Shown here: positions 7,193 to 29,640 of the stretch, in pieces | How the letters are laid out: every line of letters begins with the position of its first letter | Position numbering within the stretch: position 1 is the first letter of the stretch | Assembly: GCA_943704425.1 (NCBI GenBank) | Contig: CALSCP010001228.1 | Location: 1 to 35,082, forward strand | Reading direction: 5' to 3' | From: Ministeria vibrans ATCC 50519 | Taxonomy: Eukaryota > Protista > Filasterea | DNA length: 35,082 bases | Made by a program: the position numbers and the translations under genes | The notes under the pieces: model-generated | What the model was told of the DNA's origin: nothing | Seen by the model: the letters and a program-made list of their open reading frames with translations, nothing else | Database searches by the model: none

Positions 7193-10100
7193 ATGATGGG
7201 CGTCAAGAGTGTCGATGCGGCAGTTTTTGCCACAAAGGTTCGTTTTTTTTTCTGCTTTTCCTGACTCCTCAGTCAGAGCATTCCCCTACCCCTCGTGGTT
7301 CCTTTACCGCCTTTGTCTTGTTCTACTACCCTTTCGTCGTCTCCAACCCTTGCTGGACGCGTTCAGATTCGATTAAATTTTCTATTCCATTCAACTTTTC
7401 AATTTCGGCGCCAAAACCGTTTTTCACTTCGTTTGCCCATTTCTTAGGCTGTCGTTGACGGGCCATCGATGCTCATGGACGAAAATGAGGATGTCGACGA
7501 AGAACTGGTCGTCGAGCCGCCGGCGCCGCCTGTAGCAGCAACAGGAGCGGTCGAACAGGCGAAGAAACGACGGCGCGCAAGCGACAACGACAGCGACGCA
7601 GACTACACGACGCCCACGAAGAAGAGCGCGTCGAGTGCGTCCAAGAGGAAGCAGCAGCAGCAGCAGCAGAACAAGAAGAAGAAGAAGAAGAAGAAGAAGG
7701 AGGAGGAGGAGGCAGGCGCGGCTCAGGGCGCGAGGAAGGCAGGTGGTGCATCGCCGAAATCGCCCAAGGATGTGGAGGCGGAACTGGCGCGGTTGCTTGC
7801 CGACGACAGCGGCGACGATGATGCCGGCGACGGGGGCGCGGACGGCGAAGCGGCCATCAACACCGACGATTTGCTGAGCGACAGTGACGACGACGACGCG
7901 GCCGCAGCCAAGGCGAAACCGCTAGAGTTCTCGACGCCGAGCAAACCTGGCGGTTTTGTCGGCAAGTGCACTCTTGACACGTTCAGCAGCGACGAAGAAG
8001 AGTCGATTAAGGCGCTCATGAAGGAACGAAAAAAGGCCCACAAACGTGAGAAGAAGCAACAGCGACGGAAGGAGGAAGAGAAGACGGAGGCGCGCGCCAA
8101 GCATCGGTCCGAGGCGTCCGCCACACCATCAACAACACAAACAATGACATCAACTGCAACGGCCATGTCTGCTGCTGCAACAGCAACAACCACACCCGAA
8201 TCAACATCAACAACGACAGTCATTGCCACAAACGCACTCGCGACAGCACGCGAGTCGTCCGCCGACATCGGCGACTCGTCTCGCCCCATTGCGCCCCCAC
8301 AAAGCACAGCAGCAAGAACAACAACACCACCACCGCATTCGGATTCCACACGTGCAGTAGCAGCAGCAGCAGCAGCAATGCCTAGGGTTTTGTCATTTTC
8401 ACCCGACGACAAGTCTGAGTCTGACAAGGGCTCCTCGCCAACAACACACAATAACGCCGACAACAGCGACGAAGAGGAGACGGGTGTCGCGGTGCGACGT
8501 CGTCGGTTGACGCACGACGACAACAACAACAACCCTGTACCAGAGGAGGCCCAACAGGCGAGTGGCGGGGCAGCGCCGCTGGTCCTGACACGCGCCATGC
8601 TGCGCGGGGAGCAGATAGAGGACGACCTGTTTATGCGTCGCATGAAGGGCGGTGGGAAGTTGCGGGATGTGTTTACGGCGTCGGGCTCGGAGGACGACGA
8701 GAGCGATGTGGAACGACGTGAAACAGATTTGCAGGCGATGTTGGCCGAGGCGCAGCGATTGAAGAAGAGGAAGAAGAAGGACCGCAAGCGACGACGAGAA
8801 GAGCGCGATGCGGAGCGTGAGGAGGAGGAAGAGGACAGAGCGGTACGAGAGGCGCGTGCGAGTCGCAGTGGCAGTGGTGGTGAAAGTGCAAGTGGTGGGC
8901 ACCAAGAGGATGAAGGGTCGCATGCGAGACGCAAGAAGAAACGGCTGAGCGAGAACCAGCGTCGACAGGCCAAGTTTGAGAACACACGAGAGTCACAACG
9001 ACTGGTGCGAGACATACCTGATGCTCCTTTGCCCATTGCCACTTGCCAGGCCAAGCCTATGGCGCCCGTTCTCTCGAAAATGCGCGAGCTCTCCCAAAGT
9101 CGACTGGCGAGTGTGCGCGGAACGCCTGTCACGTCCGTCTCGTCGGACGTGTCGCAACGGACCGTGTCGTCCGTCAGTCAGAGTGCCAAGCCGAAGCGCA
9201 TTACTGCTCTTCTGGGACGTTTTGCCTTGGCAGCTGATCAACAGCGCAAGAAGGGACTGCTCGAGTTGGTGCCGACGCTAGGCAAGCGGACGGACAGCAG
9301 CTCGACGACTGGCACTGGTGTGCTTCAAATGGAGAAAGGCAGCGGCAAGACTGCAGCCTCTACCAATAGTACTACTAATGCGAACACCGACAACGATGAG
9401 GACGATGACGATGATTTGGTGGTGGTAGAGCCGCTGCAAGCGGAGGTGTCCAAGACTAAGACTCGCTCGGAACTGAAGAGCGAAATGCAACGTGCTATTG
9501 CGCAAAAACGACTCGAGGAACGACTGCGCGCGGAAAAGTACCGGCGTATGGACGACGACGAAGAGCTTGACGAAGAGGAGGGTGAGGGTGAGGGTGAGGA
9601 GGAGGAGGAGGAGGAGGAGGGCGAGGGCGAGGGCGAGGGCGAGAAAGAGGCTGATGGAGATGAAAGCGATCCCGAGTATGCCATGGGCGATGATGATGGT
9701 GGAAAGATGGACGGGGAGCGGGCGGACGATCATGATATTCTCGAGGGAGGTGCGTCGTCAGGCAAGGAAGGCGACGAAGCCGAGGAGGATGAGGAGGGAG
9801 ACGAAGAAGACCAAGAGGAGGAGGAGGAGGACGTCGACGAGAAGCATGTGGAGCGTATGACACGAGGCCAATCGCCTGAGCTGTGCAAGGCGCCTGTAGC
9901 GCGGCCTTTCTCGCCATTTCGTGAGCCTGTCGAGGACACGCAGGATCTGTTTGCAAACGCGCAGAGTCAGTATGCCACGAGCTTTGAAAACCAATCGACC
10001 CTGATGCTTCAATTGCCGGAAGAGTCGCAGGGTCTGAGTTTGGCGTTGGTGGAGGAGGACGACGAAGAAGCCGCCAAGACGGTGCTGACGAACAATGCAA

Positions 10101-11765
10101 CTTTGGGTACATCGGTGATCGCAGCGGTGGGGAACGACAAGGAGTTGAAGAAGGCGGATTCCAAGGCGGCACCGCCGCAGCGACTGACCTCATGGCCCAT
10201 GTTTGGTAGCAGTTCATCGAGGGTTGGCGCCGCAAGTGTTGAGGGCAGTCAAGCATTGGTGAGTGGCGGTGGTTCCAAGGACAACAGCAACATCAACAAC
10301 AACAACAGCAGCAGCAGCAGTGACAACAGTGGTGGTGCGACTCGCCGAGAGGATGTGTGGTCGTATACACCTAATGTGGGTGTACAGGACTCGCAGGATC
10401 CGTTTCGCGGGGTCCTTTCGTTGTGCTCGGGGCAATTTGGCAGTGCGGTGGACACGCAACCGTTGGACGCGAGTGACGAGGAGTACGCCGACGAAGAGGC
10501 ACGCTACGACGCGTTGGCGCTCAAGGCCGAGGCAGATTTGATGCGGAAGCTTGAGGCGGAGCAGGAGAAGGAGGAACAGGTGGCACGCGAGCGGAAGGCG
10601 ATGGAATCCAAGGAGAAGCAGGAGAAGGAGAAGGAGAAGGAAAAGGAAAAGGAAAAGGAACAGGAGCAGGAGCAGGAGCAGGAGCGGAAGGAGCAACAGT
10701 TGATGGAGGAGACAAGTCGAATTGAGAAGTTGACAGGTGAGGAGGAGAGTGAAATGAAGGAGGACAACGAAGAGGAAGTAGAGAAGTCGCAGAAGACGAG
10801 TGCGCCTGTAAAGAAGAAGAAGAAGAGCGACTTTGTGGAAGAGGAGGCGGAGTTGTCGGACGAAGAAGAGGAAGATGATGAAGACGATGATGATGAAGAG
10901 GCAGCAAAGGAAGGTGAAGGAGAAGAAGGAGAGCATGATGGTGAGGAGGAGGACGAGGGGGAGGATGAGGATGACGAGCAGACCATGCACCGGAGACACC
11001 TTATGGAGGAACAGGCGGAAATGGAGCAGTTCCACGAAGAGCTGTTAAACAAGCAACATGTGTTTGATTCGTAAGGCGTGCTGCACACATAGGTGTAATA
11101 ATGGATATTGATTGATTGTGTATTAGGTCGTCTGACGAGGAGGATGGCCAGCCGCGCGAGATTGCAGGGCGGCACGATGTGTGTGTGATGCCAGTGGCGC
11201 GCAAGGAACGCAAGAAGAAGAAGAAGAAGAAGAGTAAGAAGAAGGAGAAGGAGGAAGGTAATAACCGTTTTTATTTGACAATAATAATAATAATAAGACG
11301 TTATGATTATTATTAATACTAATGATAATCATTAATAATAATAATAATAATTATTTTATTAATGTTGTCTTTTTGTAGACAATGTAATGGTTGATTTGAG
11401 GGCAGAGTTGTTCAAGGATGATTTGCCGAGCGATGAAGAGACGCAAAAGTGTAATTTTCTGTCGGATGGTGATGAAGAGGTACGTACACAAGGCACACAC
11501 AATCCTCGACTAATTACTGATTGGGGGTAGGATCAAGATGAGATTCTGGAGAAGCTGAAGCGACGCGAGTATGTGCGGAACATGTCGAATTCAATGCGCG
11601 ACTCGGCGTCACTGATGGGCGACGATGTGAGTCTGCTGATGGACTCGGCAAGTCTGTTAGGCGCAGAGGACCTGTCGCGGAGGAAGCGAAATATTAACAT
11701 TCAACAGCGAAGACCGCGGTGCAGTAGCAGCGCGAACGGGTCAGCGGGTGCAAGTACTGTGACTG

Positions 11766-15067: not shown

Positions 15068-15765
15068 CACAAAGTAGAAGAAGAAAACTTTTATAATATT
15101 GACAAGTTCATTGAAATAATTGATCAACTCATTCCACTGATGTTATCTGATAAAATGGCATGGTTCATTGTTGTACAAGGGCTTGAAGCGCTCTGCTTTC
15201 GCATTCGCCTCGCTGCTGTGCTAGGATAAAAAGAAAATGTCAGTACCAGAGCGATAGAGTGAGCAGATGAGGGGAAAGCACAAAACGCTCACGAAGTATA
15301 AAACACTCCAAAGGCACAAAGGGACAATCTCGCAGCGCCTATGACTCATGCAAAGCCTATGGCATAGCCGACTAAAGCTATTGCACACGCAATAAACAGA
15401 CCACAAGGGGTCCTGATGCAGCGGGTCTCCGTGGCAAGCACAGAACGGACAGGACACGGTGTCCGGGTTGAGGCCACAGCGGACCAAAACAACGTCCCTT
15501 CCATGAGAGCACAAAACACGCACAGAACGTGAATGTTCGTGCTCTCAAAGTCGGGACACCCGACACACACACATCGACAAAAAGAGTACTCTCATTATCG
15601 CTGTGGGTCCTCCTAACACCGCATTATGTGCAGGCAATGCACTAAAGGTATCACGCGCGATAAACAAACCAACCAAAAAAAAAAAAAAAAAAAAAAATAG
15701 ACCTTTTGTCTCGCTACCGCTCACACACACGCCCATCGCTCTCTATCCTCTTTGTGGCTCTGTAG

Positions 15766-18700
15766 GAACTCCTTGATGGCTCGGTTCCCGAAGAGTACTA
15801 TGTCGTTTTCAACTCGTCAGGCGTCCTTGACCACATACTCACGCACTCAAACGAAGAGGTGGATCGTGCGCCTCTCACCAACTTATTCGATCGCATCGCG
15901 CACGCGTTTGGTTTTGACTGGTCCGCACACGGCACTCGCGACGATCACGACATCCACGGGGCTCACTCCGCAGTGTACACGGTCGGAGAAACACCGCTGG
16001 CTCGCGTGCGTACCCGCTCGCTCGACAACCATCCAGGCATGTCCACTCGTCATGGCGGCCATCGTCAGCAGGCCGAGTGGAATCACGTCACCGAGGCTCA
16101 CTGGAGCCAGACTCATGGTCTGCCAGAGTCTTTTCATGTACGCGAGTCGGGATCAGTGCCACTTGCTCCCGACACACGAACCGCCCCGGTCGACGTGCCC
16201 CTCCACCAATCCGCGGGCGAAAGTGCTCGTGCGCTTCGCTCAGCGGAACTCACACTGCAACTCATGCACGTTGAGCCCACTGGTGCAACAGCCATGTTGC
16301 AAGAATACCATCAACGCGAGCAGCGTCCCGTGCCTCTCTGCTCGTCGGAAACACGCCAACCCGCCGACCTGCTTGCCTCACGACCCGTCCACCCGTCAAC
16401 CCCCGACGGTGCAGACGCCTCCGAACAACAGCTCGCTCAGTTGGTCCATGCGTTAGCCATGGCCGAATCTGCTGAACTTGAGATGGACTCGAAAACTCTC
16501 TCGGCTCACGTTGACTTTGTGCGTGCCCACCCAAACGCCGTCACGCTCCTCTTCAACCGATTCCTCTCCACCGCCTCGGCTCCTTCCTCAGTTACCGACA
16601 AAACCCGTCGTCTGGTGCTCTCCATCCTTGGGCTTGCGGCTGGTCCCACTGCCGAGTCCATGCTGCTTCGTTGTCTTCAGGGCGAGTGTGGCACTCTGGT
16701 GAATCCGTCGTCGGGCGCTGCAACCGCCCTCGAATGGGACGTTGTTCATGCCCTCGGTCAACTGCGCCACGCCTCCTCGTCCACTCTACATGCCCTGCAC
16801 GCTCACACAATCGACGCACCTGCAAAACATTACTTGTGGCCCCTCGTCGGTGCGCTTGTGCGGCACATGCACCCCTCTCCTAGCACAGCTGCCTCGCTCG
16901 ACGCTCTTGCCGCCGCAACTCGCGCCTGCTCTAATCATCATGTCGAATGTGTCGTTGCCGGTCTCAATGCCCTCGGGAACGCCGGAGGTGCACACCACTC
17001 TCCGGACGCGCTGAGCACCATCCACGACCATCTCGAGCATCCCAGCGAGCCAGTGGTCGTTGCCGCCACTCAGGCACTTCGTCACGTGCCCACTCTCGAC
17101 GCTGAAACGCAGCTGCTGGACCGCTTGTGCGACCATCCGTCGCCTGCTGTACGTCTCTCGGCTCTCAGTGCCCTGCACGACCGTGTCCTCTCAACGGACG
17201 CTGTCCGTCGTTTGAGTCACACCGAACAGCAGCTTGTTGACCGTGTGAGCCGGAGCGAGCCTAACGACGCGCTTGCACACGACGCTCGCGTCACACAGGA
17301 CCTCGCGGCGCTTCTCGATCACAATCGAGTGACCCGTGCCACTGCTGTGGTGCGTCAAGCGCGTCGTGCCGTAAAGCATGTCCGTAATCGCCGCTACATT
17401 ACGAACGCGCCAACAGTGGCGCTCCTCACCGGCGGCTATGCCAACTCGTGGTCCGACGTCTTTGGTGTCGAAGAGGCCGGCACCAGCATCAGCATGGCGT
17501 CCGACAACTCGGGCTCCATCACCATGGCGGGCGCCAGCGAAACCACCACTCGGTCCGAACTGAAGGCTCATTCCACCGTCAACGGTGTCTTCTTGCAGGC
17601 GCGTTTTCCCATGGCCGAGGTACTCGCGGCTGTCACGTCGACACTCGACGAGCACTCCGTGCCCGCCAATGCCCTCAATGCTGGTCAGGACCCCCGTCTC
17701 GACTGCTCCCAGCTGTCCACGGTGAACTCGGCTGCCTTTGCAGCGCTTCCCGCCTGTCCTTGCTCCATTGCCAAAGACTCTAATGGCATTTTCATCAACC
17801 CCGATCGGTCGCTGTGGGTCAATTCGTACGAGAGCTCACTCATGCTTGCTTTTTACAAGCCTGGCGCCCAATTGTGCCTTACTAGTCGCCTACAAACTCC
17901 CACCGGTCCGCGTGTCGCCGAGCAACAGTGTTGCTACGCTACTCCGCTTGGTGCCAGCGCATTTGAGCTCATTACCCTTGGCGACGGCGCAGGCTCGGTG
18001 CTCTCCGTGTCACCTTGGTACAACTACGCGCGCGAGCACTTTGTCGCCGACATGGCGCCCCTCATCTCGTGCCGCAACCAAAACCAGCGTGCCACCTACA
18101 CGACGCGACGTCCGACGCTGTCGGGCACCTGTACCGCCCAGGACTCGGGTGTGACCTCGCCCGCGTCGAGTGAGCCCATTCGTCTGGCCAACGTCGCCGG
18201 CGAACAGCTCATCATGAGCTACACTGGCTACAGCGCACAGCTCAAACCCTCGATTACGGCTCTCACCAGCGTCATTGGTTATGGACACGTTCCCCTGAGC
18301 AACGAAGTGCTTCCCGTGTCGCTTTCCATGGACCAGGCTGAGCTCCTTCTTCTCTTCGATATGATTGCAGCGCAGAATTGTGTCCAGGCACTCGACGGTA
18401 CTGCCGCCTTTACCGACGACATGTTCTCCGCCATGGTTTCGTTTGCCCTGTCGCTCGGCTGCACCGCATTCACCGCGTCGCCCCTTGCCTCGTCCGTCAA
18501 CAACGTTGCAGCTGTACCTAGCAACTTCTTGCAGTACACCCAAAGTGATTTGCCGTCGGGTGTCACCTTCTTGGTGAATCGTCGCCAGGCCGAAGGCGAA
18601 CTCTTCCTTCGTGGCGTACCCCTTGTCCTCACGCCCACCTACCAGAGCAGTGCAACCCTCTTCAAGATTGCCGGCAATGTTTTGTCAAGCGTCACACCTT

Positions 18701-21700
18701 TCACCACTCTTGGTCAGTCGCCCACGCTTGCCTCCTACTCGTACGCCACCTCGCATCCGCGCACCGCCGTCCGCTTCTTTGGACCCTCGCCCGTTTCCAT
18801 CTCCTTTTCGACGGCCGTCTTCTCGTGGACTTCCACCGGCAATGGCTTCTACAGCGGCTCCATTAACATGCAGATACAGCCAAGTCTCGCCAAGTTCTCG
18901 GCGAGTGCCGTCAGCTCGGTGGACCTTACCGTGGCGGCCTCCTCCCAAATTAGCCAGGATGGCGAAGAGGGCAAACTGGCGCTGTCCGCTGACATTGCCA
19001 AACAGTCCCCGTCGAGCAGTGTCTCGCAGACCCTCAAGGAATTTCCCTACACCTTTGAGCACAACGACTTTGTCGACTCGACACCCGTCTCCACCACGCT
19101 TACCCTCGAGTACCGCTGGCAGGATCCCGTGTGCGGCTCGTGTGGCAAGGGTTGCCAGTCGTGCAAGTGGGAGTGGACCAGCTGGACCACCATCCCCGTA
19201 TGGAACCTCAACTTGCCCAGTCAGCATCAGGTCGTGGTGCAGGACCAGGTGACATTGACTGAGTCACCGGGCCCTTATGGCGCGACCGTATTCGACGGTA
19301 GCGCCGAGCGCGAACTGGACTTCTCCCAAAACACTCGCTTTGCCTTGTGCTCATGGAACGCCTTTGCTGTCACCAACACGCGCATCGCCCTGTACGAGGT
19401 GGGCCTCGTCACTAGTGCCAGTGCCACGCCAACCACTTGGATGCCGGTTGGCACAGCTCGCTTTGCTGCCATCTACCCGTCCGGTGGCATTCAGTCGGCA
19501 CAGCTCTGTGCAGTGCGAGGCACCACCTTTGGCGGGCAGAAGCTTGTGCAGTACAGCAACGGATTTGACATCGACACGACGCCGCCGCTGGTGGGTGTGG
19601 TATTTGACGGCGAGCTTAATGCCGATCTCACCTACACGAGCGTGCAATACTCCGCCATGGGCTCGTGGACCATGAACGACCCAACCTCGGGGCCTATCGC
19701 GACCGAGATTACCGTCGCTCTCGCACCATTCACCACCGAACTCCTTGTGCCTTGGGTCTTTGTGGGCGCCGTCAAAACCTACACTCAATGGTTCACGTTG
19801 CAGACGGCCCTACCGCAAGACACCACCGTCTACTACGGCGTGCGTGGCATTAACGAGGCCGGCCTCATGTCGGTGCAGTGGTCTAATGGTGTCACTATTG
19901 ACTTGACGCCGCCCGTTCTCCCGTCTCCTGGCGTGCTCATTTCCTCGGCTCGACGTGCTCTCTTGCCGGCCGTTAACGACGAGTCATCCGACATTCTGCG
20001 CTTCTTCCAGTCCGACGCGTCAAGGGTCAACGTCACCTTCCCGGCTCTTAACGACCCCGACAGCGGCATCAGCACGGTGGACGTGGCGTGTGGACCGAGT
20101 CCGGGCGACATTACTACGGCTGTTGCCTCCGCCACCGGCCTTACCTATGTGTCGTCGTCGCCCTGGCACGAGTTCACCGAACTCTCGCTTGTGCACGAGA
20201 GCTCTTACTTCTGCTGGATTGTCGCCTACAATGGCGCCGAAGACCACGCCGTTTACATTGGACCGGCTTTTGTCGTCGACACTGAGGCACCCGTTGTACT
20301 GCGAGTGCTCGACGGCAACGCCGCCACCGACGAGGTTTTTCAGGAGACCCCAAGCGAGGCGTGCGTCAGTTGGCTTGCCCAGGATAACACCAGCTCCATT
20401 GTGCGTGTTGAATGGGCCGTGGGCACTGCAGTCAACACGGATGATGTGCTCTCGTGGGGTCCGGCCTCAAATCAGGTGTCAGCGGGACGCGACTGTCGCA
20501 CCGTGTCGCCGCCCATGACCGACGAGACGATGCTGTTCACGTCGGTGCGCGTCACCGACGCTGCTGGCTCCGTGAGCGCTCCAATGAGTTCGAATGGGTT
20601 TATTGTGGACGACACACCACCCGTGGCGGGTGCGGTCCTCGACGGGTGCACCGTTTCGGGCAGTGACATTGAATTTCAGGCGGACCCCACTCGCGCATGT
20701 GTCACGCTGACTGGCTTTTCTGATGTGGACAGCGGTATTTTGGGCTACAAGGTAGCGTACGGCACGTCCCCTGGCTCGGAGTCCCTCGCGCCCTTCACCT
20801 GGGTCGACGGCCTTGCCCTCTCCATCACCGAAGGTCTCAACTTGACGGCAGGCGTGCCTGTTTACGGCACGGTGCGTGTGTACAATGGCGCCGGCCTGTT
20901 CACGCAAGCAAGCTCCAATGGGTTTGTCACGGCCCCGTATCCGCCTGCTCTTGGCACGGTGTTTGACGGACAGAATGCGACCGTTGACCAGGCATTCACG
21001 AGCAACCCAACACACATTTGTGGTACCTGGTCAGGCTTTAGCGAGCCTATCAGCGGTGTCACCTATTCGGTTGCGCTCGGCTCGCAACGTTGGCTCACCG
21101 ACCTTGCGCCCCTTCGTTCGGTCGGCACCGACACAGATTACTGCTTTACCAACGTGTCGGTGGCGCTCGGCGTCACCGCTCACGTTATTGTGACTGCCAC
21201 CAGCGGCGCCAACCTTAAGACTAGCACCAGCAGCAATGGTATGGTAGTGGACACAACGGAACCCGTGGCGGGACTCATCAATGACGGACCCGGCTCGGAC
21301 GTCGAATACATAAAAGATTTGGCTCAGGCATCGTGGAGCGCCACACCGGCACCCACACTGTACGGCTACTCTGACCAGGTCGGCCCTCCCGAGCCCAAGA
21401 GCACCGCGCAGTTTGCATACCTCGCCGAGGATCTTATTGTGTTCCAGCCGGCCGATGTGCGCGTGCCTGTTGCTGGAAATGACTGCGACGATGTGCTGCG
21501 ACGCTCTGGAGGAACCGCTACCACGGGCCTCTACATTGTTCAAGGTGAAATGTCGTCGGCTGTCCAGCTCATGTGCGAAATGACCACTGCCGGCGGAGGC
21601 GTCGAGCTGATTGCTGCGTACACTGACGCGGATGGTGCCCACTGGAACTACACGTCGGACTGGGGCTTTGGACCCGCCTTTGGCAACGTGGGCGATCTCG

Positions 21701-24700
21701 ACTTGACCACGGGCGGTCACGATTTCCGCTCGGTCGCCTACCACTTGCGCAAGTATGCGGACTTTGCCGTGAGCGACTCGACCAATCTGCAACAGACGGT
21801 GGTCACGCTGTTTGGATGCCTGCAAAACTCCACGGTGGAGAAAACGATGCAGTCCATGCTCACGAATCAAACCTTCCTTGATCTGTCCAAGGCTAACAAT
21901 GCGGGTCCGCCCACCTCCTACCGCTCTTGCTTTGTCTCTGCCACACACGTGCCCTCCTACTTCAAGTCGTCCCTCGACGGCTCGAGTCTTATCAGCACCG
22001 ACGGGCAGATATTGCTGGGCGCCTCGTGCAAAACCAATGACATTGTGCCTATCGCGGGTGCGGTTGCGCCTCCCTCGTCCACCGCTGACAAGTATCCCGC
22101 AGGTCTTGGCTTCATTGCCGATACCCCTCCCACCACCTTCAAGACACCCGACGTGGGCGACAACGATCTGTGTGCCTCGGGTGCCACCTATGCGGCAACT
22201 GCATCGCAATGTGCGCTTGCCTACCCGCAAACAGTTTACCTGTTTGGGGTGAAGGGCCGTCTCGACTCGCAGTCGGGTCCGGCCTGGCGCGTGGGCGGTG
22301 GCAAGGGCACCCTCCTTGGCTTTATTGACCATGAGTCGACGGTCGTCTCGTACGAGGCGTGTCTTGGCACAGCACCGTACAAGTGCGACGCCGCCCCACG
22401 TCGCTCCACTGGAGCAACTGCCGCTGTGACCTTTAGCAATGCGGTCATGACCGAGGGCACGCGCTACTTTACGACTGTGTGGGCGCACAACGGCGCCGGT
22501 CTGGTGAACTCGTCGTACACCAATGGGTTTGTTTATGACACGAGTGCACCCGAGCCCGGCCGCATTGTCGACGGCACAAACATCGACGTGGATGTCGACT
22601 ACGTTGGTGTTAACAACCAACTCGCCGCGTGCTTTGACGCCTTTGCTACTCCTTCGGGCGTTGCCTTTTATCAAATCGGCTGGGGTACGTTCCCCGGTCA
22701 GGACGACATTTTTGGCTTTGAGACGCTCTCGGCGCCCCTCCCAAGTGTCATTTGCATCACGCGTGTCCCCAGTCCTGTGCTCACGCCGCTGCGTGACTAC
22801 TACTTTACGGTGCGTGCTGTCACACTACACGGCCTTGTGACCGAGGGCCGTAGCGATGGGTTCCTTGTGGACACGTCGCCGCCCTTGACCTACTACGTTT
22901 ACGACGGAGATAGTGCCACGGACGAGGCGTACCTCACGCCCGAAACGGCACCACTGTGGGGCCGTTGGCTCATGCTTGAGGACTCCCCGTCAACCATTAA
23001 CTACGACGTGGCCATCGAGACGCTCACTGGCGAATCCGTCGTGCCCTATGCTGACATGGGTCCGCTTACGTCCGCCTCCTTTGCCGGTGCTTCTCTCGCC
23101 GACGGCCTTTCCTATCGATTTGCCGTGCGCGGTACAAACCAGGCAGGTCTTTCGACCGTTGCCTACTCCAACGGCTTCCTCGTGGACATGAGTCCGCCCA
23201 CGGCAGGCGTTGTGGTCATCACAGGACCGTCCGTGGAGTCGCGCGTCCCCGGCTACGTTGCCCCTGTCAATGGTGCCGTGAAGTACTTATCGGTGCTCAA
23301 CGAGGCGTGTTTCACAATCGCCGGCTTTGCCGAGCCGCACGCATCGCTTACCGGTTATGAGGTGCGGTACGTGCTGAGCGAGCCTAACGCCGAGTCATCG
23401 CCGAGCTGGGTGACCAGCACGACGCTGTTGCCCAATGCGACTGACTCGTGCATTAGCCTGAGCGGCACCGCAGAAGGTCTCACGCTTGCCATCAGTATTC
23501 GTGCCGTGTCGATCACGGGCACGGCAACCGAAGCAGTCAGTCAGGTCGTGCGATTTTCGGTGGTACCGCCGCAGGGCAGTGTCGCGCGTGACGGTCTCAC
23601 CCTTGAGGATCTCGAGTATGTTCCGTGCTCGCCCGTGGGCGAGCCTACAACACGCATGTGTGCCAACTGGGACGCGTTTTCGACGCCCGGCACCGGCGGT
23701 GGACGCGTGGTTGCCTACCAGCTCGCTTATGCCGGTCTTGCGTCCGTCTTCAATGTGACCGAGGGCTGTGGTGCACCCTTGCCCTCCGTCTACAACACAC
23801 CTGCAACCACCGTCGTCCAGACCATTACGGGCTTTATTGCCTCCGGTCTCTCGGCAAACGTCTCGACCAACGGCGTTCGTTGCGACGCGTCGCCGCCGAC
23901 CGTGGGTGTCGTCGACACCCAGTGTGCCATTGTGGTGAGTGGCGAAGACGCGCTTCGTCAGCAGACATGGCGTCAGTCGGGTTTCACAGTGCCCACGCCC
24001 ACCATTGCCTATGTGGCATCGGCCGCCGACGTGTGCTTCCACTGGTCCAACTTTACGGAGAACGACATTCCTGGCGGTGTCACGTATCAATTTGGACTGG
24101 GCCTCAATGCCATGGCGCCCGCCAACGTGCTTCCCTTTGAGAACACCGGCACCGTCACGTCGGTTGTCGCAACCGGCCTGGCCAATGTCTTTGCCGGCTC
24201 TAGCGTGCCCATCTACGGTTTGGTGCGTGCGACCAACATCGCCAACATGTCGTCGATTGGCGCGTCGCAGGCTGTCTGGGTGGACTCGGCAAAGCCAACG
24301 GTCACGTCGATGACTGTCACCAACAGTGTGGGCTCGCAGACACAAACGGTCACTGACCTGCTCTGTGCCAACGTGACGGGTCTCACCGCCAACGGTCCGA
24401 GTGGTCTCGCACGAGTAGTCTATGCCGCCGTAGACTCGACTGGTTCGCGTGTATCATCGTACGTCGCCGTCGATCCGGCGCTCTGGTCGAACCCCTTCTT
24501 TGAGATTTGTTTGTCGCCGACCGTCGGGGCGCTGCAGACCCTTGTTAACAATGCACGCTACACGGTACAGTTGTATGCGACGTCGGGCGCGAGTGTCACC
24601 AATGTGTACCAGAGCGGCGCGATCCTCATCGACACGCTTGCGCCGTCCGCTGGCAACGTCGCGCTCATTGTCGACGGTGTGCTCGATCAGCCGTTTCTTG

Positions 24701-27700
24701 CCGACTCAGACAACAGCGGTGCGTGTGCCTCGTGGTCGGGTGTCAATGATGTCGGCAGTGGACTTGCCTCCGTTCATGTGCAGCTTGTGAAGAGCACTGC
24801 ATCTGCCCAGGGTGCTGTTGAGGTGGACGTAAACGTGGGAGTTGCCGCGTCTGAGGGCACTCACTGCTTCTCGCCCACCGTCAACGACGAGCAATATTTT
24901 TTCCGTGTGATCGCCACTGATGTGGCGGGTCTTCGTGCCACGAGTGAGTCGGCCACTTTCCTGGTCGACAAGACCTTCCCAGTGGGTTCGGTGAGTGCCG
25001 CGTCGTACGTGGCGGCGGGTGCGCAGGTGACGTATGCCGGAAGCGATCCCGAGACGGCTGTTGTTTCGACGCGTCTTGGCTTTGGTTCGTCGTCGACGGG
25101 CACAGCTAATCTTGTGCCGTTTGCGCCCATGTTTCTCTCGGCGGCGACTCTCAGCTATGCATTTGCAGTGCCGTCCGGCACCGAGGGCTATCTCATCTTG
25201 GAGCTGACCAACGGTGCGGGCATGGTCAGTCTGTCATACTCGAGCTTGGTGACCGTCGACGCGTCCGGTCCGACGCCCAGCCAGGTGTTCAATCGTGTGT
25301 GTGCCACCAACTCGGTACAAGATCGCTTTATTCAGGTGGACGACTCTATCACGGCGTGTTGGTTGCCTTTTTCGGATCCCCAGACCCCCTTCCACTACGT
25401 GTTGTCGATCGTGGAGGCGCGCGATGGCACTACGCCAGCCAACACTATGCCAAGCTCCCCCGTCTTTGCCGTGCCCTACACGTACGCGGCAGCCGAGAAC
25501 GTCACCATGGTCACTTTGGATCCGTTGCCGGGCAGCGTCAAGCTGACCAACGGTAAGCGCTACGTCACGTGCATTTCGGGTGTGAACCAGGCTGGTATCT
25601 ATGGGGAGGCGAGCTGCACGTTGAGCTACCTTGTGGACACAACGCCGCCCGTGGCCGGCCAGGTCCATGGTGGTGTCAACGAGACCATCTACGAGCAGTC
25701 CACCGACAAGCTCTTTACCATCTTTTGGGGGAATTTCTCCGATCCCGAGTCGGGTCCCACCGCAAACAACGGCTCCTTTGCCTGGCTCGTCGGCTACACG
25801 AACCGCTCGGACATTCTGAGCGAGCCGTCGCTCACCACGTCGGGTTTGCTCAAGAACGTTGGCTATTTGCCCACGCTGGGACGGTACGAGTGGGTGGGAC
25901 TCTCACTTAATCACGGCCAGCAATACTATGGCGTGGTGTGCGCCGTCAATGCTGCCGGCGGCACCACCTGTGTCCGCTCCAATCCGGTCATGGTCAACAC
26001 AACGCTACCCGCAAGCTTTTTCTATGCAACCGAACCGCCGCGTTTCAACGCGACCAACGGCTACAACGGCTATCCGTACACCTCCGACAACGAGACGTTT
26101 GTGTACGAGCTTACGTCGTGCGTCGACGAGGTCTCCGGCTGTGCCTACTGCCTCGTGTGTGTCTCATCGGATCGCGATGGCAATTGCGGTGTGTTGCCTC
26201 AGACTAACTTGGGACTGTTGCAGACGCTTATTTTGCAGAACTCGACGCTCGACCAGAACACATTCTACTACTACAATGTGACCTGTTGCAATCACGGTGG
26301 CCTGTGCGACTCGAAGCTTACGACAGGCGTGCTTGTCGATGTGACCCCGCCCGAGACGGTTTCGCGTCCGCACTTGCGTCTGCCTACCCCCTCCCACGTG
26401 CCCTTTCCCAATGCGCCTGTGTGCGAGCAATGCGGACGTGCGATTGAAGTGCAGACAAACACGTCGGCGTCGGAGTGGACGCTCTTCTCAGGTTGGGCCA
26501 CCGAGCTCGTGGTGGTGGTGGAGCCGCGCGACAACGAGACGGGTGTGCTCAACACGACGGTGGTGGTGACGTCGCTCTCAAAGGGCATCGTCTATGGTAC
26601 ATTGGATGGCCTGCGTCAGGGCCCTGAGCCCGCCGTGTTTCCTACGCCCGCCGACAACAGCGACTTTGCCGGCACACTCTCGCCCATCAGTGTACCCAAT
26701 CTCAACATGACGCAGGGTGAGCGATTGACCGTGCAGTACACGGCGACCAACGGGGCATTTTCTCCCTCCACTAGCGCTCTCACCCACGTAGTCATTGATT
26801 TAACACCACCGCCGGCACCCCGCGTGTGGGTTTCGCTTGCGGGCATCAATGCCGCTGACAAGGTGCTCACGTCCTACTTGCCCCACTCGGACAACATCAC
26901 CTTCCACTATACGGTTCCCGAAGATCCCGATGCGACCCCCATTGTGCAAGTGTACGCGAGTGTGCAAGCGTACAACCGCAACACCGGCCTCATGGTACCC
27001 TTTAGCGAGTACCCTGCCGGTGATGTGTGGTCGCTGTGCGGCATGGACGGTACATGTGCCATCAAATGGACCGAGGACACCGTGCCGGACGACGGCAATG
27101 CATACCGTGTTGCCGTGCGCACAGTCAACGCTGCGGGTGTCCCTTCGGCAGTGAGTCTGAGCGAACTGACCGTGGTGGACACGAGTGCACCGCATCCGGG
27201 CAGCATCCACGAAGGCTCGGGCACGGTGGACGTGTCGGCTTCCTTTGGCGAGCTGTGGTGCACGGGCGCGGTGGAATTTGACGCTCACAGCCACATTGTA
27301 ACCGTGGTGTATCTGCTGAACGCTTCAAGTTTGGCGGCGCCCGTCTTCGAGACGGTGGTGGAGCCAACGGCGTCGACGGGTGCGGTAAGTGTGCGTGTGC
27401 CGAGTGAGCTGCTGTCAGATGACACGCAGTACACATGTGCCATGATGGCCACCAATGCGGCCGGTCTTTTCACGGTGGTACAGGGCAACGGAGTGCAGTA
27501 CCACCCGCCGTCAGTTGAGGTGACACTGCCCACGAGCGGCTCATCCGTGTGGTCGTTCTCGTTGGGGTTGCCCGACAGCGCCGTAGGTTGGTCGTCTTTG
27601 TCGCTGTCGATGATGTCGTCTTCAGTGCAAGCAGGACCAACGACGCTCGACGTGAACTTCCCGACGCTCGGTGTGAACGGTCCTGTGTTGGGCAATGGTG

Positions 27701-29640
27701 CTCGTCGTCGTAGCGCGCTCGTGAGCCACGGCTGGCCCACACAGCTGTGGTATGTAGCACCCGATAACTCGCCGGGCCTACTGCGTGCCATCTGGTTTAT
27801 GGGTCAGAACGAGTGGGGCAACGACTCGGCGCTGTACACCGACTTTGCGCCGCCCATGACGATTCAGCTTCAGTCGGATGCCAACAACATTGTGTCGACG
27901 GGCGCGTCGGACAACCTGACACACGTCGATGTGTTGCGCTGGAACGAGACGGTGGGTGTGTGGCAGTCGAGCTACTGTGGTCTGCCTGTGAACGAGACGC
28001 TGCTGCAGTGGGGCGCGCGCTATCATTCCTTCACGACGTGCCGGAGTGGCTACTTTGCATTGTGGTTGCGCACGGAGGAGAACAGCTCACTGCCGGCGAG
28101 TGTTATTGCCGGTGCGGGAGTAGGTGCAGTCGTACTGTTGCTGCTGTTGGTGCTCCTCTTGGTGTTTGTGGTGCGGTACCGTCGTGTGTTTCACCGCAAG
28201 AAGCGCATTCGCAGGCGACAACAGGCATCGATGAGTGCGGCGTCGCTTTGGAGCAACACGTCGTCGGTGATCATGGGCGAGTCGGTGCACATGGGGGCAA
28301 CGGCGCTCAATGTGTTTGGCGGAGACACAATTGGCGAGAGCAACGACCACGAGACACTGGATGTGCTTGAGATTGCTACCATGATGGCGATGAGTGACCT
28401 AGACGGCTCGGCGTCGCTCGACGACCGAGACCACGACTCGATGAGCCAGACGTCGTCGGCGACGGGCCAATTGTCGGGCGCGCAGCTGTTTGTTAACGAG
28501 GCCTACGAGGGCTTTGAGGGCTACGACACAGTTTACGACAAGGGCAGCGTGTCGCACAGCCATGACGACGACGACTTTGCCATTGAGGGTGGTGAGGCAC
28601 ACATGGCGGAAGAGGATGGCGGGGCGATTGTGGCTGCTATGTTCAAGGTGCAATTGACGGAGGCGCAGCGGTGGGATGCGATTGGGGAGGTGCTCACGCG
28701 CGTGTCAGACGAGTTGGTGCAGCGTGATCAGGAGCTGGAGGAGCAGATGCATGCGTATGGACACAAGCGGGAGCTGGCGAGCATGAAGGTGCAGAAGAGT
28801 GCATTTGGAGTACTCAAGCGAATGTCGCAGCACCAGTCAGCGGGGTCGTCGTCGATGGGGGCGCACTCGCATGCGGCGCAAGAAGAGGCTGTGATCAAGG
28901 TGAGCACGGAGAAGGAAGTGAAGAGCGCCATTGATGTGGCGCAGCAGCTGTCGGTCGTGGGCCAGCAGTGCCAGATGCTGTGTCCCGACGCCCGACTGCG
29001 CGCCATTATTGTGGCGCATGTGGAGCATCTGCAGAACACGGTGATGGCCTTTTCAATTGTGAAGCGACGCGCGACGGTTACCGAACGACTGGTGTTTGCG
29101 CGCAAGATGCGCCAGTTGCAGGCGCAGCTGGTCGAAGCGTGTGTGGCGGCGTCGATTGCGTACGAGACGGACGTTGCCGAGGTCAATGCCGAGACGTGGC
29201 GCAAGACAGTGCGCATCAAGGCGGGCGCCAAGAAGCGCTCGGCTCTGCGTGAAAGTGTGCTCGTTGATCCGGCTCTCTCGGCGGTGGTTGCAGGAGCGCG
29301 CAATACCGCGCCTGACGGTGCTGCCGAGTACGAGACGTTGGGCGACGCGACGGGCGAAGAGTACGGCGGCAGACACGACGGTCTTCTCGACACAATTGAC
29401 ACTGGATCAGAAGCGCAGCAGCAACAGCAGGAGAAAACAGATGCGTGGCCGGGCAGTGATTCTGCAAGTATGTTTGGTGCACTGAGTGGGTTGGAAGCGC
29501 CTGTGCGGCAACAGCAGCAGCAGCGGATATATGAGAGTGCCGGAATGGACGATGCACCGGCAGCATCTGCGCTGACTGCCAGTACTGAAGTCGACGACAT
29601 TCTCGGTGGCCTTGATAATTTTTTGGATTTGGGTGAATGA
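15766..29640 (+). CDS. Giant single-pass type I membrane protein (>=4,624 aa in one terminal exon): vitellogenin-N/MTP-like domain, RNRR site, AMOP, ~21 DxTPP beta-sandwich (FN3/Ig-like) repeats with an intelectin/fibrinogen-like insert, GPS-like module, TM helix, cytoplasmic vinculin/alpha-catenin-like tail; 5' exon(s) not identified
   Basis: Acceptor ctctgtag at 15765 is in frame with the 4593-aa ORF. AMOP motifs: LPACPC, KPGAQLC, QQCCY, GAGS, HFVADMAP..C, RRP. Recurring VD.TPP..G.V.DG / F.DPESGI..Y / V.A.N.AGL...SNG units. TM helix VIAGAGVGAVVLLLLLVLLLVFVV (28102-28173) is followed by the basic stop-transfer RYRRVFHRKKRIRRR. Confidence 0.9.
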   Translation, partial: ELLDGSVPEEYYVVFNSSGVLDHILTHSNEEVDRAPLTNLFDRIAHAFGFDWSAHGTRDDHDIHGAHSAVYTVGETPLARVRTRSLDNHPGMSTRHGGHRQQAEWNHVTEAHWSQTHGLPESFHVRESGSVPLAPDTRTAPVDVPLHQSAGESARALRSAELTLQLMHVEPTGATAMLQEYHQREQRPVPLCSSETRQPADLLASRPVHPSTPDGADASEQQLAQLVHALAMAESAELEMDSKTLSAHVDFVRAHPNAVTLLFNRFLSTASAPSSVTDKTRRLVLSILGLAAGPTAESMLLRCLQGECGTLVNPSSGAATALEWDVVHALGQLRHASSSTLHALHAHTIDAPAKHYLWPLVGALVRHMHPSPSTAASLDALAAATRACSNHHVECVVAGLNALGNAGGAHHSPDALSTIHDHLEHPSEPVVVAATQALRHVPTLDAETQLLDRLCDHPSPAVRLSALSALHDRVLSTDAVRRLSHTEQQLVDRVSRSEPNDALAHDARVTQDLAALLDHNRVTRATAVVRQARRAVKHVRNRRYITNAPTVALLTGGYANSWSDVFGVEEAGTSISMASDNSGSITMAGASETTTRSELKAHSTVNGVFLQARFPMAEVLAAVTSTLDEHSVPANALNAGQDPRLDCSQLSTVNSAAFAALPACPCSIAKDSNGIFINPDRSLWVNSYESSLMLAFYKPGAQLCLTSRLQTPTGPRVAEQQCCYATPLGASAFELITLGDGAGSVLSVSPWYNYAREHFVADMAPLISCRNQNQRATYTTRRPTLSGTCTAQDSGVTSPASSEPIRLANVAGEQLIMSYTGYSAQLKPSITALTSVIGYGHVPLSNEVLPVSLSMDQAELLLLFDMIAAQNCVQALDGTAAFTDDMFSAMVSFALSLGCTAFTASPLASSVNNVAAVPSNFLQYTQSDLPSGVTFLVNRRQAEGELFLRGVPLVLTPTYQSSATLFKIAGNVLSSVTPFTTLGQSPTLASYSYATSHPRTAVRFFGPSPVSISFSTAVFSWTSTGNGFYSGSINMQIQPSLAKFSASAVSSVDLTVAASSQISQDGEEGKLALSADIAKQSPSSSVSQTLKEFPYTFEHNDFVDSTPVSTTLTLEYRWQDPVCGSCGKGCQSCKWEWTSWTTIPVWNLNLPSQHQVVVQDQVTLTESPGPYGATVFDGSAERELDFSQNTRFALCSWNAFAVTNTRIALYEVGLVTSASATPTTWMPVGTARFAAIYPSGGIQSAQLCAVRGTTFGGQKLVQYSNGFDIDTTPPLVGVVFDGELNADLTYTSVQYSAMGSWTMNDPTSGPIATEITVALAPFTTELLVPWVFVGAVKTYTQWFTLQTALPQDTTVYYGVRGINEAGLMSVQWSNGVTIDLTPPVLPSPGVLISSARRALLPAVNDESSDILRFFQSDASRVNVTFPALNDPDSGISTVDVACGPSPGDITTAVASATGLTYVSSSPWHEFTELSLVHESSYFCWIVAYNGAEDHAVYIGPAFVVDTEAPVVLRVLDGNAATDEVFQETPSEACVSWLAQDNTSSIVRVEWAVGTAVNTDDVLSWGPASNQVSAGRDCRTVSPPMTDETMLFTSVRVTDAAGSVSAPMSSNGFIVDDTPPVAGAVLDGCTVSGSDIEFQADPTRACVTLTGFSDVDSGILGYKVAYGTSPGSESLAPFTWVDGLALSITEGLNLTAGVPVYGTVRVYNGAGLFTQASSNGFVTAPYPPALGTVFDGQNATVDQAFTSNPTHICGTWSGFSEPISGVTYSVALGSQRWLTDLAPLRSVGTDTDYCFTNVSVALGVTAHVIVTATSGANLKTSTSSNGMVVDTTEPVAGLINDGPGSDVEYIKDLAQASWSATPAPTLYGYSDQVGPPEPKSTAQFAYLAEDLIVFQPADVRVPVAGNDCDDVLRRSGGTATTGLYIVQGEMSSAVQLMCEMTTAGGGVELIAAYTDADGAHWNYTSDWGFGPAFGNVGDLDLTTGGHDFRSVAYHLRKYADFAVSDSTNLQQTVVTLFGCLQNSTVEKTMQSMLTNQTFLDLSKANNAGPPTSYRSCFVSATHVPSYFKSSLDGSSLISTDGQILLGASCKTNDIVPIAGAVAPPSSTADKYPAGLGFIADTPPTTFKTPDVGDNDLCASGATYAATASQCALAYPQTVYLFGVKGRLDSQSGPAWRVGGGKGTLLGFIDHESTVVSYEACLGTAPYKCDAAPRRSTGATAAVTFSNAVMTEGTRYFTTVWAHNGAGLVNSSYTNGFVYDTSAPEPGRIVDGTNIDVDVDYVGVNNQLAACFDAFATPSGVAFYQIGWGTFPGQDDIFGFETLSAPLPSVICITRVPSPVLTPLRDYYFTVRAVTLHGLVTEGRSDGFLVDTSPPLTYYVYDGDSATDEAYLTPETAPLWGRWLMLEDSPSTINYDVAIETLTGESVVPYADMGPLTSASFAGASLADGLSYRFAVRGTNQAGLSTVAYSNGFLVDMSPPTAGVVVITGPSVESRVPGYVAPVNGAVKYLSVLNEACFTIAGFAEPHASLTGYEVRYVLSEPNAESSPSWVTSTTLLPNATDSCISLSGTAEGLTLAISIRAVSITGTATEAVSQVVRFSVVPPQGSVARDGLTLEDLEYVPCSPVGEPTTRMCANWDAFSTPGTGGGRVVAYQLAYAGLASVFNVTEGCGAPLPSVYNTPATTVVQTITGFIASGLSANVSTNGVRCDASPPTVGVVDTQCAIVVSGEDALRQQTWRQSGFTVPTPTIAYVASAADVCFHWSNFTENDIPGGVTYQFGLGLNAMAPANVLPFENTGTVTSVVATGLANVFAGSSVPIYGLVRATNIANMSSIGASQAVWVDSAKPTVTSMTVTNSVGSQTQTVTDLLCANVTGLTANGPSGLARVVYAAVDSTGSRVSSYVAVDPALWSNPFFEICLSPTVGALQTLVNNARYTVQLYATSGASVTNVYQSGAILIDTLAPSAGNVALIVDGVLDQPFLADSDNSGACASWSGVNDVGSGLASVHVQLVKSTASAQGAVEVDVNVGVAASEGTHCFSPTVNDEQYFFRVIATDVAGLRATSESATFLVDKTFPVGSVSAASYVAAGAQVTYAGSDPETAVVSTRLGFGSSSTGTANLVPFAPMFLSAATLSYAFAVPSGTEGYLILELTNGAGMVSLSYSSLVTVDASGPTPSQVFNRVCATNSVQDRFIQVDDSITACWLPFSDPQTPFHYVLSIVEARDGTTPANTMPSSPVFAVPYTYAAAENVTMVTLDPLPGSVKLTNGKRYVTCISGVNQAGIYGEASCTLSYLVDTTPPVAGQVHGGVNETIYEQSTDKLFTIFWGNFSDPESGPTANNGSFAWLVGYTNRSDILSEPSLTTSGLLKNVGYLPTLGRYEWVGLSLNHGQQYYGVVCAVNAAGGTTCVRSNPVMVNTTLPASFFYATEPPRFNATNGYNGYPYTSDNETFVYELTSCVDEVSGCAYCLVCVSSDRDGNCGVLPQTNLGLLQTLILQNSTLDQNTFYYYNVTCCNHGGLCDSKLTTGVLVDVTPPETVSRPHLRLPTPSHVPFPNAPVCEQCGRAIEVQTNTSASEWTLFSGWATELVVVVEPRDNETGVLNTTVVVTSLSKGIVYGTLDGLRQGPEPAVFPTPADNSDFAGTLSPISVPNLNMTQGERLTVQYTATNGAFSPSTSALTHVVIDLTPPPAPRVWVSLAGINAADKVLTSYLPHSDNITFHYTVPEDPDATPIVQVYASVQAYNRNTGLMVPFSEYPAGDVWSLCGMDGTCAIKWTEDTVPDDGNAYRVAVRTVNAAGVPSAVSLSELTVVDTSAPHPGSIHEGSGTVDVSASFGELWCTGAVEFDAHSHIVTVVYLLNASSLAAPVFETVVEPTASTGAVSVRVPSELLSDDTQYTCAMMATNAAGLFTVVQGNGVQYHPPSVEVTLPTSGSSVWSFSLGLPDSAVGWSSLSLSMMSSSVQAGPTTLDVNFPTLGVNGPVLGNGARRRSALVSHGWPTQLWYVAPDNSPGLLRAIWFMGQNEWGNDSALYTDFAPPMTIQLQSDANNIVSTGASDNLTHVDVLRWNETVGVWQSSYCGLPVNETLLQWGARYHSFTTCRSGYFALWLRTEENSSLPASVIAGAGVGAVVLLLLLVLLLVFVVRYRRVFHRKKRIRRRQQASMSAASLWSNTSSVIMGESVHMGATALNVFGGDTIGESNDHETLDVLEIATMMAMSDLDGSASLDDRDHDSMSQTSSATGQLSGAQLFVNEAYEGFEGYDTVYDKGSVSHSHDDDDFAIEGGEAHMAEEDGGAIVAAMFKVQLTEAQRWDAIGEVLTRVSDELVQRDQELEEQMHAYGHKRELASMKVQKSAFGVLKRMSQHQSAGSSSMGAHSHAAQEEAVIKVSTEKEVKSAIDVAQQLSVVGQQCQMLCPDARLRAIIVAHVEHLQNTVMAFSIVKRRATVTERLVFARKMRQLQAQLVEACVAASIAYETDVAEVNAETWRKTVRIKAGAKKRSALRESVLVDPALSAVVAGARNTAPDGAAEYETLGDATGEEYGGRHDGLLDTIDTGSEAQQQQQEKTDAWPGSDSASMFGALSGLEAPVRQQQQQRIYESAGMDDAPAASALTASTEVDDILGGLDNFLDLGE

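Follow-up and report, generated by a model that had tools for sequence, protein, structure and literature searches.

Vinculin and alpha-catenin have, to our knowledge, been described as soluble adaptors in which the tail bundle is always under the control of the protein's own head. Covalent fusions of cadherins to alpha-catenin have been engineered: one report describes a VE-cadherin-alpha-catenin fusion as strengthening actin anchorage and stabilising junctions (PMC8729784), and E-cadherin/alphaE-catenin chimeras have been characterised that homodimerise and mimic the native complex incompletely (PMC4586751). Alpha-catenin/vinculin-like proteins have also been named in unicellular holozoans, Dictyostelium and Thecamonas by a survey of the pre-metazoan adhesome (PMC4265756). 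A limited literature search found no natural transmembrane (TM) protein with a domain of the vinculin tail (Vt) or alpha-catenin actin-binding domain (ABD) type. Here we analyse 35,082 nucleotides of the filasterean Ministeria vibrans ATCC 50519 (assembly GCA_943704425.1, contig CALSCP010001228.1, positions 1 to 35,082; hereafter, the window), which encode a giant receptor whose cytoplasmic tail probably contains a divergent vinculin/alpha-catenin-type tail bundle.

The engineered cadherin-alpha-catenin fusions would be the closest functional analogue, as they too are single-pass adhesion receptors that covalently bear an alpha-catenin-type actin-binding region. Those fusions are laboratory constructs of animal proteins that keep most of alpha-catenin, whereas the receptor is a natural protist gene with the tail bundle only and an unrelated ectodomain. 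Vinculin is soluble, whereas the receptor bundle is anchored to a TM receptor and lacks the head domains D1-D4, hence talin binding and head-tail autoinhibition. Unlike alpha-catenin, the receptor lacks the beta-catenin-binding N domain and the mechanosensitive M domain, and structural-alignment identity between the two is 13-15%. No match to the Pfam Vinculin profile (PF01044) was found anywhere in the 4,593-residue protein, and where a helical head would be expected, the bundle is preceded by the TM helix and by 147 residues that are disordered or basic. With its head absent and the profile match failing, the receptor falls outside the vinculin family as that family is defined, in architecture as well. 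We view it, with moderate confidence, as a known domain type at orphan-level divergence in an undescribed architecture.

Predicted fold of the receptor tail

A single exon of 4,624 codons encodes the ectodomain, the TM helix and the cytoplasmic tail; the first GTG of its frame, at 15859, yields a protein of 4,593 amino acids (aa; 15859-29640). A Kyte-Doolittle scan of all 4,624 codons found one segment above 1.8, with a peak of 3.35, and the tail that follows it measures 488 aa, in agreement with the single TM helix and tail of about 490 aa described in the initial annotation. Six strings quoted there were all located in frame and in the order given, and they are marked below as quoted motifs. 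The start coordinate that accompanied them, 28610, lies one base out of frame, and the in-frame domain spans 28615-29250. The features of the receptor's C-terminal part are listed here with helices (H) as assigned by DSSP; residue numbers and predicted local distance difference test (pLDDT) values are those of AlphaFold2 model 1 unless stated otherwise.

28102-28173 (+), single TM helix, aa 4082-4105, VIAGAGVGAVVLLLLLVLLLVFVV, from the Kyte-Doolittle scan
28174-28221 (+), basic juxtamembrane stop-transfer stretch RYRRVFHRKKRIRRRQ, from the translation
28222-28614 (+), Ser/Asp-rich linker with three tyrosines (EAYEGFEGYDTVYDKG), predicted to be disordered (pLDDT below 50, residues 1-25 of model 2)
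28615-29250 (+), predicted helical bundle resembling Vt and the alpha-catenin ABD, aa 4253-4464, from AlphaFold2, Foldseek and VIA-align
28618-28647 (+), short N-terminal helix, candidate H1, residues 2-11, AIVAAMFKVQ
28660-28695 (+), quoted motif EAQRWDAIGEVL
28660-28830 (+), long helix, candidate H2 with an extension, residues 16-72, containing GHKREL
28759-28776 (+), quoted motif GHKREL
28831-28863 (+), low-complexity loop (SAGSSSMGAHS...), core of the insertion, residues 73-83, no secondary structure, pLDDT 52-58
28864-28980 (+), helix, candidate H3, residues 84-122, pLDDT 77-91, containing AIDVA and ending at the L of LCPD
28927-28941 (+), quoted motif AIDVA
28978-29031 (+), quoted motif LCPDARLRAIIVAHVEHL
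28981-28989 (+), C-P-D turn separating candidate H3 from candidate H4, residues 123-125
28990-29070 (+), helix, candidate H4, ARLRAIIVAHVEHLQNTVMAFSIVKRR, residues 126-152, pLDDT 90-95
29077-29247 (+), last helix, candidate H5 with a C-terminal extension, residues 155-211, pLDDT 86-90, falling to 43 at its end
29113-29172 (+), quoted motif QLQAQLVEACVAASIAYETD
29194-29205 (+), quoted motif TWRK
29251-29637 (+), disordered C-terminal region with poly-Q runs (pLDDT below 50, residues 215-366 of model 2)

Because no homologue was found from which an alignment could be built, both AlphaFold2 models were built from the single sequence, with model 1 covering the 212-aa domain and model 2 a 366-aa construct (aa 4228-4593). 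Model 1 has a mean pLDDT of 77, a predicted template modelling score of 0.66 and helices at residues 2-11, 16-72, 84-122, 126-152 and 155-211. Averaged in blocks, its pLDDT is 80-83 at residues 11-40, drops to 58 by residues 61-70 and lies at 77-95 over residues 91-180. The low-complexity insertion that had been noticed in the bundle (SQHQSAGSSSMGAHSHAAQEE...) is real, and it appears in the model as a stretch of low confidence (pLDDT 52-65, residues 51-90). The same five helices are present in model 2 (pLDDT 70-88), the rest of which is disordered apart from two low-confidence helices, at residues 244-255 and 349-361, the latter corresponding to the terminal LD-like DDILGGLDNFLDL.

We compared both models with known structures using Foldseek and VIA-align, a geometry-only aligner that is independent of Foldseek. 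Among 350,542 PDB chains, the first seven Foldseek ranks for model 1 are all vinculin or metavinculin tails or alphaE-catenin ABDs (E 0.10-0.19, probability 0.92-0.99, 16-23% identity), and the Vt/alpha-catenin family occupies most of the top 30. With model 2, this family takes every one of ranks 1-16 (E 0.05-0.22). The family alignments span about 103 columns, and the Vt structures among the top matches are 4pr9, 5l0d, 3myi and 1qkr; unrelated bundles, such as the gp41 five-helix bundle, designed filaments and LAP2alpha, were assigned probabilities of 0.1-0.6. In VIA-align, which was run with each model against 48,161 representative chains, rank 1 for model 1 is the ABD of the alpha-catenin HMP-1 on F-actin (7uuw_G; Z 13.2, root-mean-square deviation (rmsd) 2.2 Å over 122 aa), with Vt on F-actin (3jbi_V) at rank 3 (Z 11.8) and the first unrelated bundles at Z 11.9. 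Model 2 again placed the HMP-1 ABD first (7uuw_G; Z 12.8, rmsd 2.3 Å over 117 aa) and Vt on F-actin second (3jbi_V; Z 11.7), with the first unrelated bundles at Z 11.1, and re-aligning Foldseek's candidates added human alpha-catenin (7utj_G; Z 12.9). Because two PDB-wide searches that are blind to the named family rank it first, twice, a chance match from a generic bundle is hard to obtain, and the predicted structures suggest, with moderate strength, that the match exceeds chance. To the same moderate degree, the comparison with Vt and the alpha-catenin ABD that the initial annotation had proposed came out in favour of the family for two models and two aligners.

The two branches of the family resemble the receptor tail in different respects. 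The vinculin tail (human residues 879-1066) and metavinculin, which supply top Foldseek matches, form a bundle whose size and connectivity are similar to those predicted for the receptor tail, and the best geometric match in the PDB is the alpha-catenin ABD (alphaE/alphaN-catenin and C. elegans HMP-1) in its F-actin-bound, four-helix state. The receptor bundle and Vt have in common a Cys-x-Asp turn that links helices 3 and 4, an ..AASI...TD sequence that ends the last helix and a basic C-terminal end. The last helix of the receptor holds VAASIAYETD, the second Trp (in TWRK) and the basic end RIKAGAKKR, and Vt, too, has a Trp a few residues past AASI...TD. CPD comprises the sole non-helical residues between model helices 84-122 and 126-152, and since it falls exactly at this three-residue helix break, the motif register fits the C-T-D turn of vinculin, likewise a break between helices. 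CPD is also identical to the alpha-catenin motif named in the initial annotation. The bundle contains only two Trp residues, at both of the expected ends (after H1 and after H5). The first lies in EAQRW (28660-28674), after the short N-terminal helix, and we assume that it corresponds to W912 at H1 of Vt, an equivalence that also leans on AELSRW in a vinculin-family tail of the same genome, on contig C173. The receptor differs from Vt in its over-long second helix, the low-complexity loop that follows and its lack of a PF01044 match. Judged by motif spacing, the segment between helices 4 and 5 is also about 16 residues shorter than in human vinculin.

Relationship to the vinculin family

Several results weigh against placing the receptor tail in this family, and by sequence alone the relationship is not demonstrable. 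The PF01044 match that had been put forward as a check fails: hmmscan of the whole protein, the tail and the domain gave no Vinculin match even at E 10, and a genome scan with PF01044 found nine places on three other contigs, with the receptor tail not among them. Among those places are two complete vinculin-family genes with heads, one each on contigs C173 and C579, while the short contig C525 carries a third tail; the family genes match PF01044 at up to 94 bits. We aligned the tail exons of these three, as single exons with none joined, into a profile that matches vinculin in the PDB at 1e-17 to 1e-19 (human vinculin at 1e-17) and alpha-catenin at about 1e-9. Searched genome-wide, this profile finds its three inputs only and not the receptor tail. 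The receptor tail scores 4.6 bits against it in hmmsearch --max, a value reached by 51 of 2,000 shuffles (empirical p 0.026). In hhalign the probability is 1.3%, with the CPDARLR stretch alone aligned, and the local score is reached by seven of 200 shuffles (p 0.035) and the global score by 21 of 200. Searches with phmmer gave 0 matches at E 10 in the PDB for the domain and its C-terminal half, and an exhaustive phmmer search of 1.84 billion cluster representatives returned a tandem-repeat artefact (P0001) only and no relative. Each sequence-only test came out negative or at best marginal.

The structural comparisons carry reservations of their own. Foldseek E-values of 0.05-0.3 are non-significant by themselves, and a VIA-align Z of about 13 is, by the tool's own warning, within the range that helical models reach through a common arrangement; p130Cas/FAT-type and designed bundles trail by only 1-2 Z units. 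The models derive from a single sequence; they draw the first long helix as a single rod of 57 residues and, with low confidence, carry helix on past the end of the last one. Neither aligner gives a residue-level alignment by which the structural register could be matched to the motif register in the last helix. Furthermore, the amino-acid term of Foldseek and the motifs noted earlier draw on the same information and are not independent.

Searches for relatives of the receptor tail had the same outcome throughout. Word-indexed protein searches with the tail inside the giant protein found no relative, nor did a metagenome scan with the tail; a metagenome scan with the canonical vinculin tail exon found nothing, and two queries of the ESM Atlas gave no usable match. 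The tail's own sequence is absent from the protein collections searched, its own genome holds no paralogue, and a match on contig C2587 (E 0.09) was taken as noise; the tail is an orphan sequence. Pfam matches of the receptor or its tail to TRM13 and PI3K iSH2 were discarded as far under cut-off. The artefact P0001, a public protein of 289 aa, consists of 5.6 copies of a 51-aa unit with CPDIRECAYLLQHLEY, five copies of which inflate the E-value; a dozen unrelated Pfam families give sub-threshold matches to it and the PDB gives none, and it was rejected as a relative. P0001 draws inflated E-values from many unrelated queries, and constitutes a trap for exhaustive HMMER searches.

Compared directly with the three vinculin-family tails of its own genome, the receptor tail has two co-linear features in common with them, a CxD/N-x-R-L-[RK] turn and an AAS with which the last helix ends. 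A BLASTP pair with the C173 tail (E 0.016) brings the candidate H3 helix and the CxD turn into register, with STEKEVKSAI-DVA...QQCQMLCPDARLRAIIVAHVEHL aligned to GSRRELLTAAKDVA...TGRHCADRRLREALYHYVDRL, and relaxed hhalign stays co-linear on to VAAS/EAAS, at 24% identity over 76 columns. The AAS of the receptor's last helix aligns with the AAS of human vinculin and with that of AAEAASF in C173. In the best BLASTP segment against C525, IAYETD..ETWR is paired with ISYTQS..ETFK, and by manual count this segment sits at most 2 residues off the expected distance from the CxD/CxN anchor. Both hmmsearch and hhalign align candidate H4 with the family's DRRLK..L..V.R.P segment. The CPD column reads CTD in vinculin and CAD, CKD and CTN in the own-genome tails, and the family's helix-4 motif IxxSVKA is kept only in part, as SIVKRRA. 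One equivalence drawn in the initial annotation, that of GHKREL with GTKRAL, is probably wrong, since BLASTP with C173 aligns STEKEVKSAIDVA with GSRRELLTAAKDVA instead; STEKEV is probably the counterpart of GTKRAL/GSRREL, which would leave GHKREL in the over-long second helix or the insertion. The tail motifs are present and co-linear in the receptor, with a similarity that reaches only p 0.026-0.035 against shuffles. The own-genome tails match PF01044 and PDB vinculin, whereas the receptor tail matches neither, which indicates that it is not a recent copy of the C173, C579 or C525 tail.

The vinculin-family tails of this genome have peculiarities of their own. Like the receptor, the C173 tail has a low-complexity insert of a comparable kind, which lies just before its aligned GSRRELLTAAKDVA segment; this insert (NKSASGNGMTGNNSSSNQNGRNN...) is within a PF01044-positive gene (C173:84504-86345, -). 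The same open reading frame (ORF) runs for about 400 further residues after the bundle, disordered and containing poly-Q, which is unusual for the family. The C525 tail exon (540-932, -) covers H3-H5 and ends in ETFKLESK and a Pro/Ala/Thr-rich end, on a contig of 1.9 kb with no head exons in reach. A protein search with the C173 tail found nothing, and one with the own-genome tail profile found only fragments of this organism in an ENA metagenome assembly. A protein identical to C525 occurs in the ENA metagenome assembly ERZ23497376, and the sample behind that assembly must therefore have contained this organism or one almost identical to it.

Marginal statistics of this kind would be expected if the tail were a generic up-down four-helix bundle unrelated by descent, either an LD-docking bundle like FAT or the C-terminal (CCH) domain of p130Cas or a lineage-specific scaffold, with its motifs due to chance and helical composition. 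The cytoplasmic adhesion-plaque bundles of FAT, p130Cas CCH and the GIT1 PBD are of similar size, bind LD motifs and reach Z 9-11, and with talin R7R8, TLNRD1 and designed bundles included, p130Cas, FAK/Pyk2 FAT and GIT1 stand at Z 9-12, near the top match; for helical bundles, a Z below about 13 may by the tool's note mean a common arrangement only. The protein also ends in an LD-like helix of the kind that such bundles bind. We nevertheless judge this explanation less likely, because two aligners with two models each rank the Vt/ABD family first (among 48,161 and 350,542 chains), because this family combines the longest alignments with the lowest rmsd and exceeds every other bundle family in Foldseek probability and identity, and because own-genome family members carry the CxD turn and the AAS that ends the last helix at co-linear positions. 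Both aligners place FAT-type bundles further down the list, with a low Foldseek probability (0.35 for Pyk2 FAT, 2lk4), and no motifs common to them and the receptor were noticed.

That the tail has no autonomous domain, and consists of amphipathic helices, either disordered or joined in a coiled-coil dimer, that AlphaFold2 packed together for want of a partner, is improbable. The predictions are single-sequence, the mean pLDDT of five models ranges from 51 to 77, the bundle in model 2 reaches pLDDT 70-88 only, one helix is 57 residues long, and the protein-language-model recognition value is low, with no neighbour in the Atlas. Against this, the last three helices reach a pLDDT of about 90 without an alignment, the helix boundaries recur with different construct ends, and short, well-defined turns (CPD; residues 153-154) typify a bundle and not a continuous coiled coil.

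The exon itself bears on whether tail and ectodomain belong together.

15766-29640 (+), giant terminal exon, 4,624 stop-free codons and the stop codon at 29638-29640, from the ORF listing

A polypyrimidine tract and a TAG at 15765, which resemble a 3' splice site, lie directly before the frame. The frame starts just past this acceptor-like sequence, which suggests a very large terminal exon with a 5' partner exon upstream, and the start codon and signal peptide of the gene presumably sit in that separate exon. The GC content at third codon positions (GC3) is 0.62-0.76 in each 900-nt block of the frame, 0.70 across the cytoplasmic tail and 0.77 across the bundle, and 0.46 immediately past the stop. 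Within the frame no low-GC island was found, every 120-nt window having a GC of at least 0.49, and the flanks go lower. Receptor ectodomain, TM helix and bundle share one uninterrupted, uniformly codon-biased exon. A gene-model artefact that placed the tail on a separate polypeptide, by an unrecognised intron, an alternative 3' end or misassembly, is very improbable even with the gene's 5' end missing from the exon, given 13.9 kb free of stops, a GC3 that is constant over the TM-tail boundary, no low-GC island and a sharp fall of GC just after the stop codon. The initial annotation's claim that the bundle is fused to an AMOP-bearing receptor stands as far as the single exon, the AMOP domain and the predicted fold are concerned, and does not stand on profile matches, either to PF01044 or to the own-genome tails.

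A possible adaptor-free link to actin

If the tail is a vinculin/alpha-catenin-type bundle, as we consider probable, then an actin-binding bundle would have moved without the vinculin head to the cytoplasmic side of a type-I receptor whose ectodomain combines AMOP and GH24 lysozyme-like domains with a long stalk of repeats. The bundle, a predicted fold of about 210 aa with four long antiparallel helices and a short N-terminal one, would be a highly divergent relative of Vt and the ABD. Going by the modelled fold, it quite possibly binds F-actin directly. More tentatively, an alpha-catenin/vinculin-type bundle welded to a giant adhesion receptor might constitute a one-polypeptide, adaptor-free and possibly force-sensitive link from the surface to F-actin. 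In such a scheme, the bundle would tie the receptor straight to cortical F-actin along the helix-4/5 face, as in the family, and actin would bear any load on the ectodomain with neither talin nor catenin in between. Acidic lipids could be favoured by two basic segments, the C-terminal end (TWRKTVRIKAGAKKR) and the stretch next to the membrane. Constitutive binding, as opposed to head-regulated binding, is conceivable given the short first helix and the fact that the best matches are four-helix states bound to actin.

The flanking disordered regions, tyrosines and terminal LD-like helix would permit regulation. An LD-like amphipathic helix, DDILGGLDNFLDLGE, closes the protein at about 29584-29622 (+), where AlphaFold2 gives a low-confidence helix (model 2, residues 349-361). 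The vinculin tail and FAT-type bundles bind LD-type helices, and contact between the terminal helix and the bundle, within the molecule or in trans, is conceivable from the model. Three near-adjacent tyrosines in acidic surroundings (NEAYEGFEGYDTVYDKG; 28480-28540, +) lie between the TM helix and the bundle, and more follow past the bundle in AEYETLG, EEYGG and RIYESAG; these are possible candidates for phosphotyrosine docking sites.

Besides the vinculin-family genes described above, the genome has four loci for talin-type I/LWEQ domains and three for integrin beta. It therefore contains the donor family as well as machinery for actin-based adhesion, and because talin-type, integrin beta and vinculin-family adaptors are encoded, adaptor-free linkage would be a hypothesis and no necessity. 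If the tail does stand by itself on a membrane receptor, the domain repertoire of the vinculin family would gain a new architecture, in which the tail is a mobile module independent of the head, and the receptor would offer a minimal natural system in which to ask how far adhesion mechanics needs adaptors. It could also inform how actin-linked adhesion was assembled before animals. The domain was missed by every profile search tried, so that similar fusions could escape routine annotation. Should the tail instead be a generic bundle, the finding would reduce to a lineage-specific receptor with an orphan helical domain in its tail.

The actin genes of the assembly are themselves fragmented. The canonical actin gene (C932, 1420-2601, +) is split by an assembly gap after about residue 300, with the N run flanked by a CT/GA microsatellite, and its last exon is present on each of the short contigs C2000 and C1139. 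The only intact actin-family ORF, on contig C1769, encodes a full-length but divergent paralogue of 379 aa.

Ectodomain and neighbouring features

Two ectodomain features were delimited.

17743-18141 (+), AMOP domain, aa 629-761, matched by PDB phmmer to Isthmin-1 (9c6t_A, E 3.1e-8)
18265-18594 (+), GH24 (phage-type) lysozyme-like domain, aa 803-912, matched to Pfam Phage_lysozyme (E 3.5e-11, 43.9 bits, above cut-off)

The presence of AMOP in the ectodomain, claimed earlier, is supported by the Isthmin-1 match and by Pfam AMOP, which scores 21.5 bits in the whole-protein scan and 27.5 bits, above cut-off, in the genome scan, where the receptor's AMOP is the sole match. It precedes the single TM helix and is thus extracellular, as in AMOP-domain adhesion proteins of the MUC4, Isthmin and SUSD2 type. 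The GH24 region also matches PDB structures of a lysozyme (6h9d_A, E 1.6e-6) and of the GH24 muramidase 8b2s_A. A GH24 domain placed directly after AMOP in a giant eukaryotic receptor is an observation in its own right, and judging from these matches, it could serve a bacterivore in peptidoglycan binding or bacteriolysis. In the region that had been called lipid-transport-like, Pfam gives only a weak HEAT_2 match.

Elsewhere in the genome, another stop-free frame of 3,220 codons (C1679:104670-114329, -) is weakly like the juxtamembrane stalk of the receptor (E 7e-4). A TM helix was not found within that exon, which may encode a second giant repeat-stalk surface protein. Upstream of the receptor, the window contains an ATG-initiated ORF of 1,201 aa (7469-11074, +) with no Pfam match at E 10, and the region of this ORF shows strong positive GC skew and AT skew.

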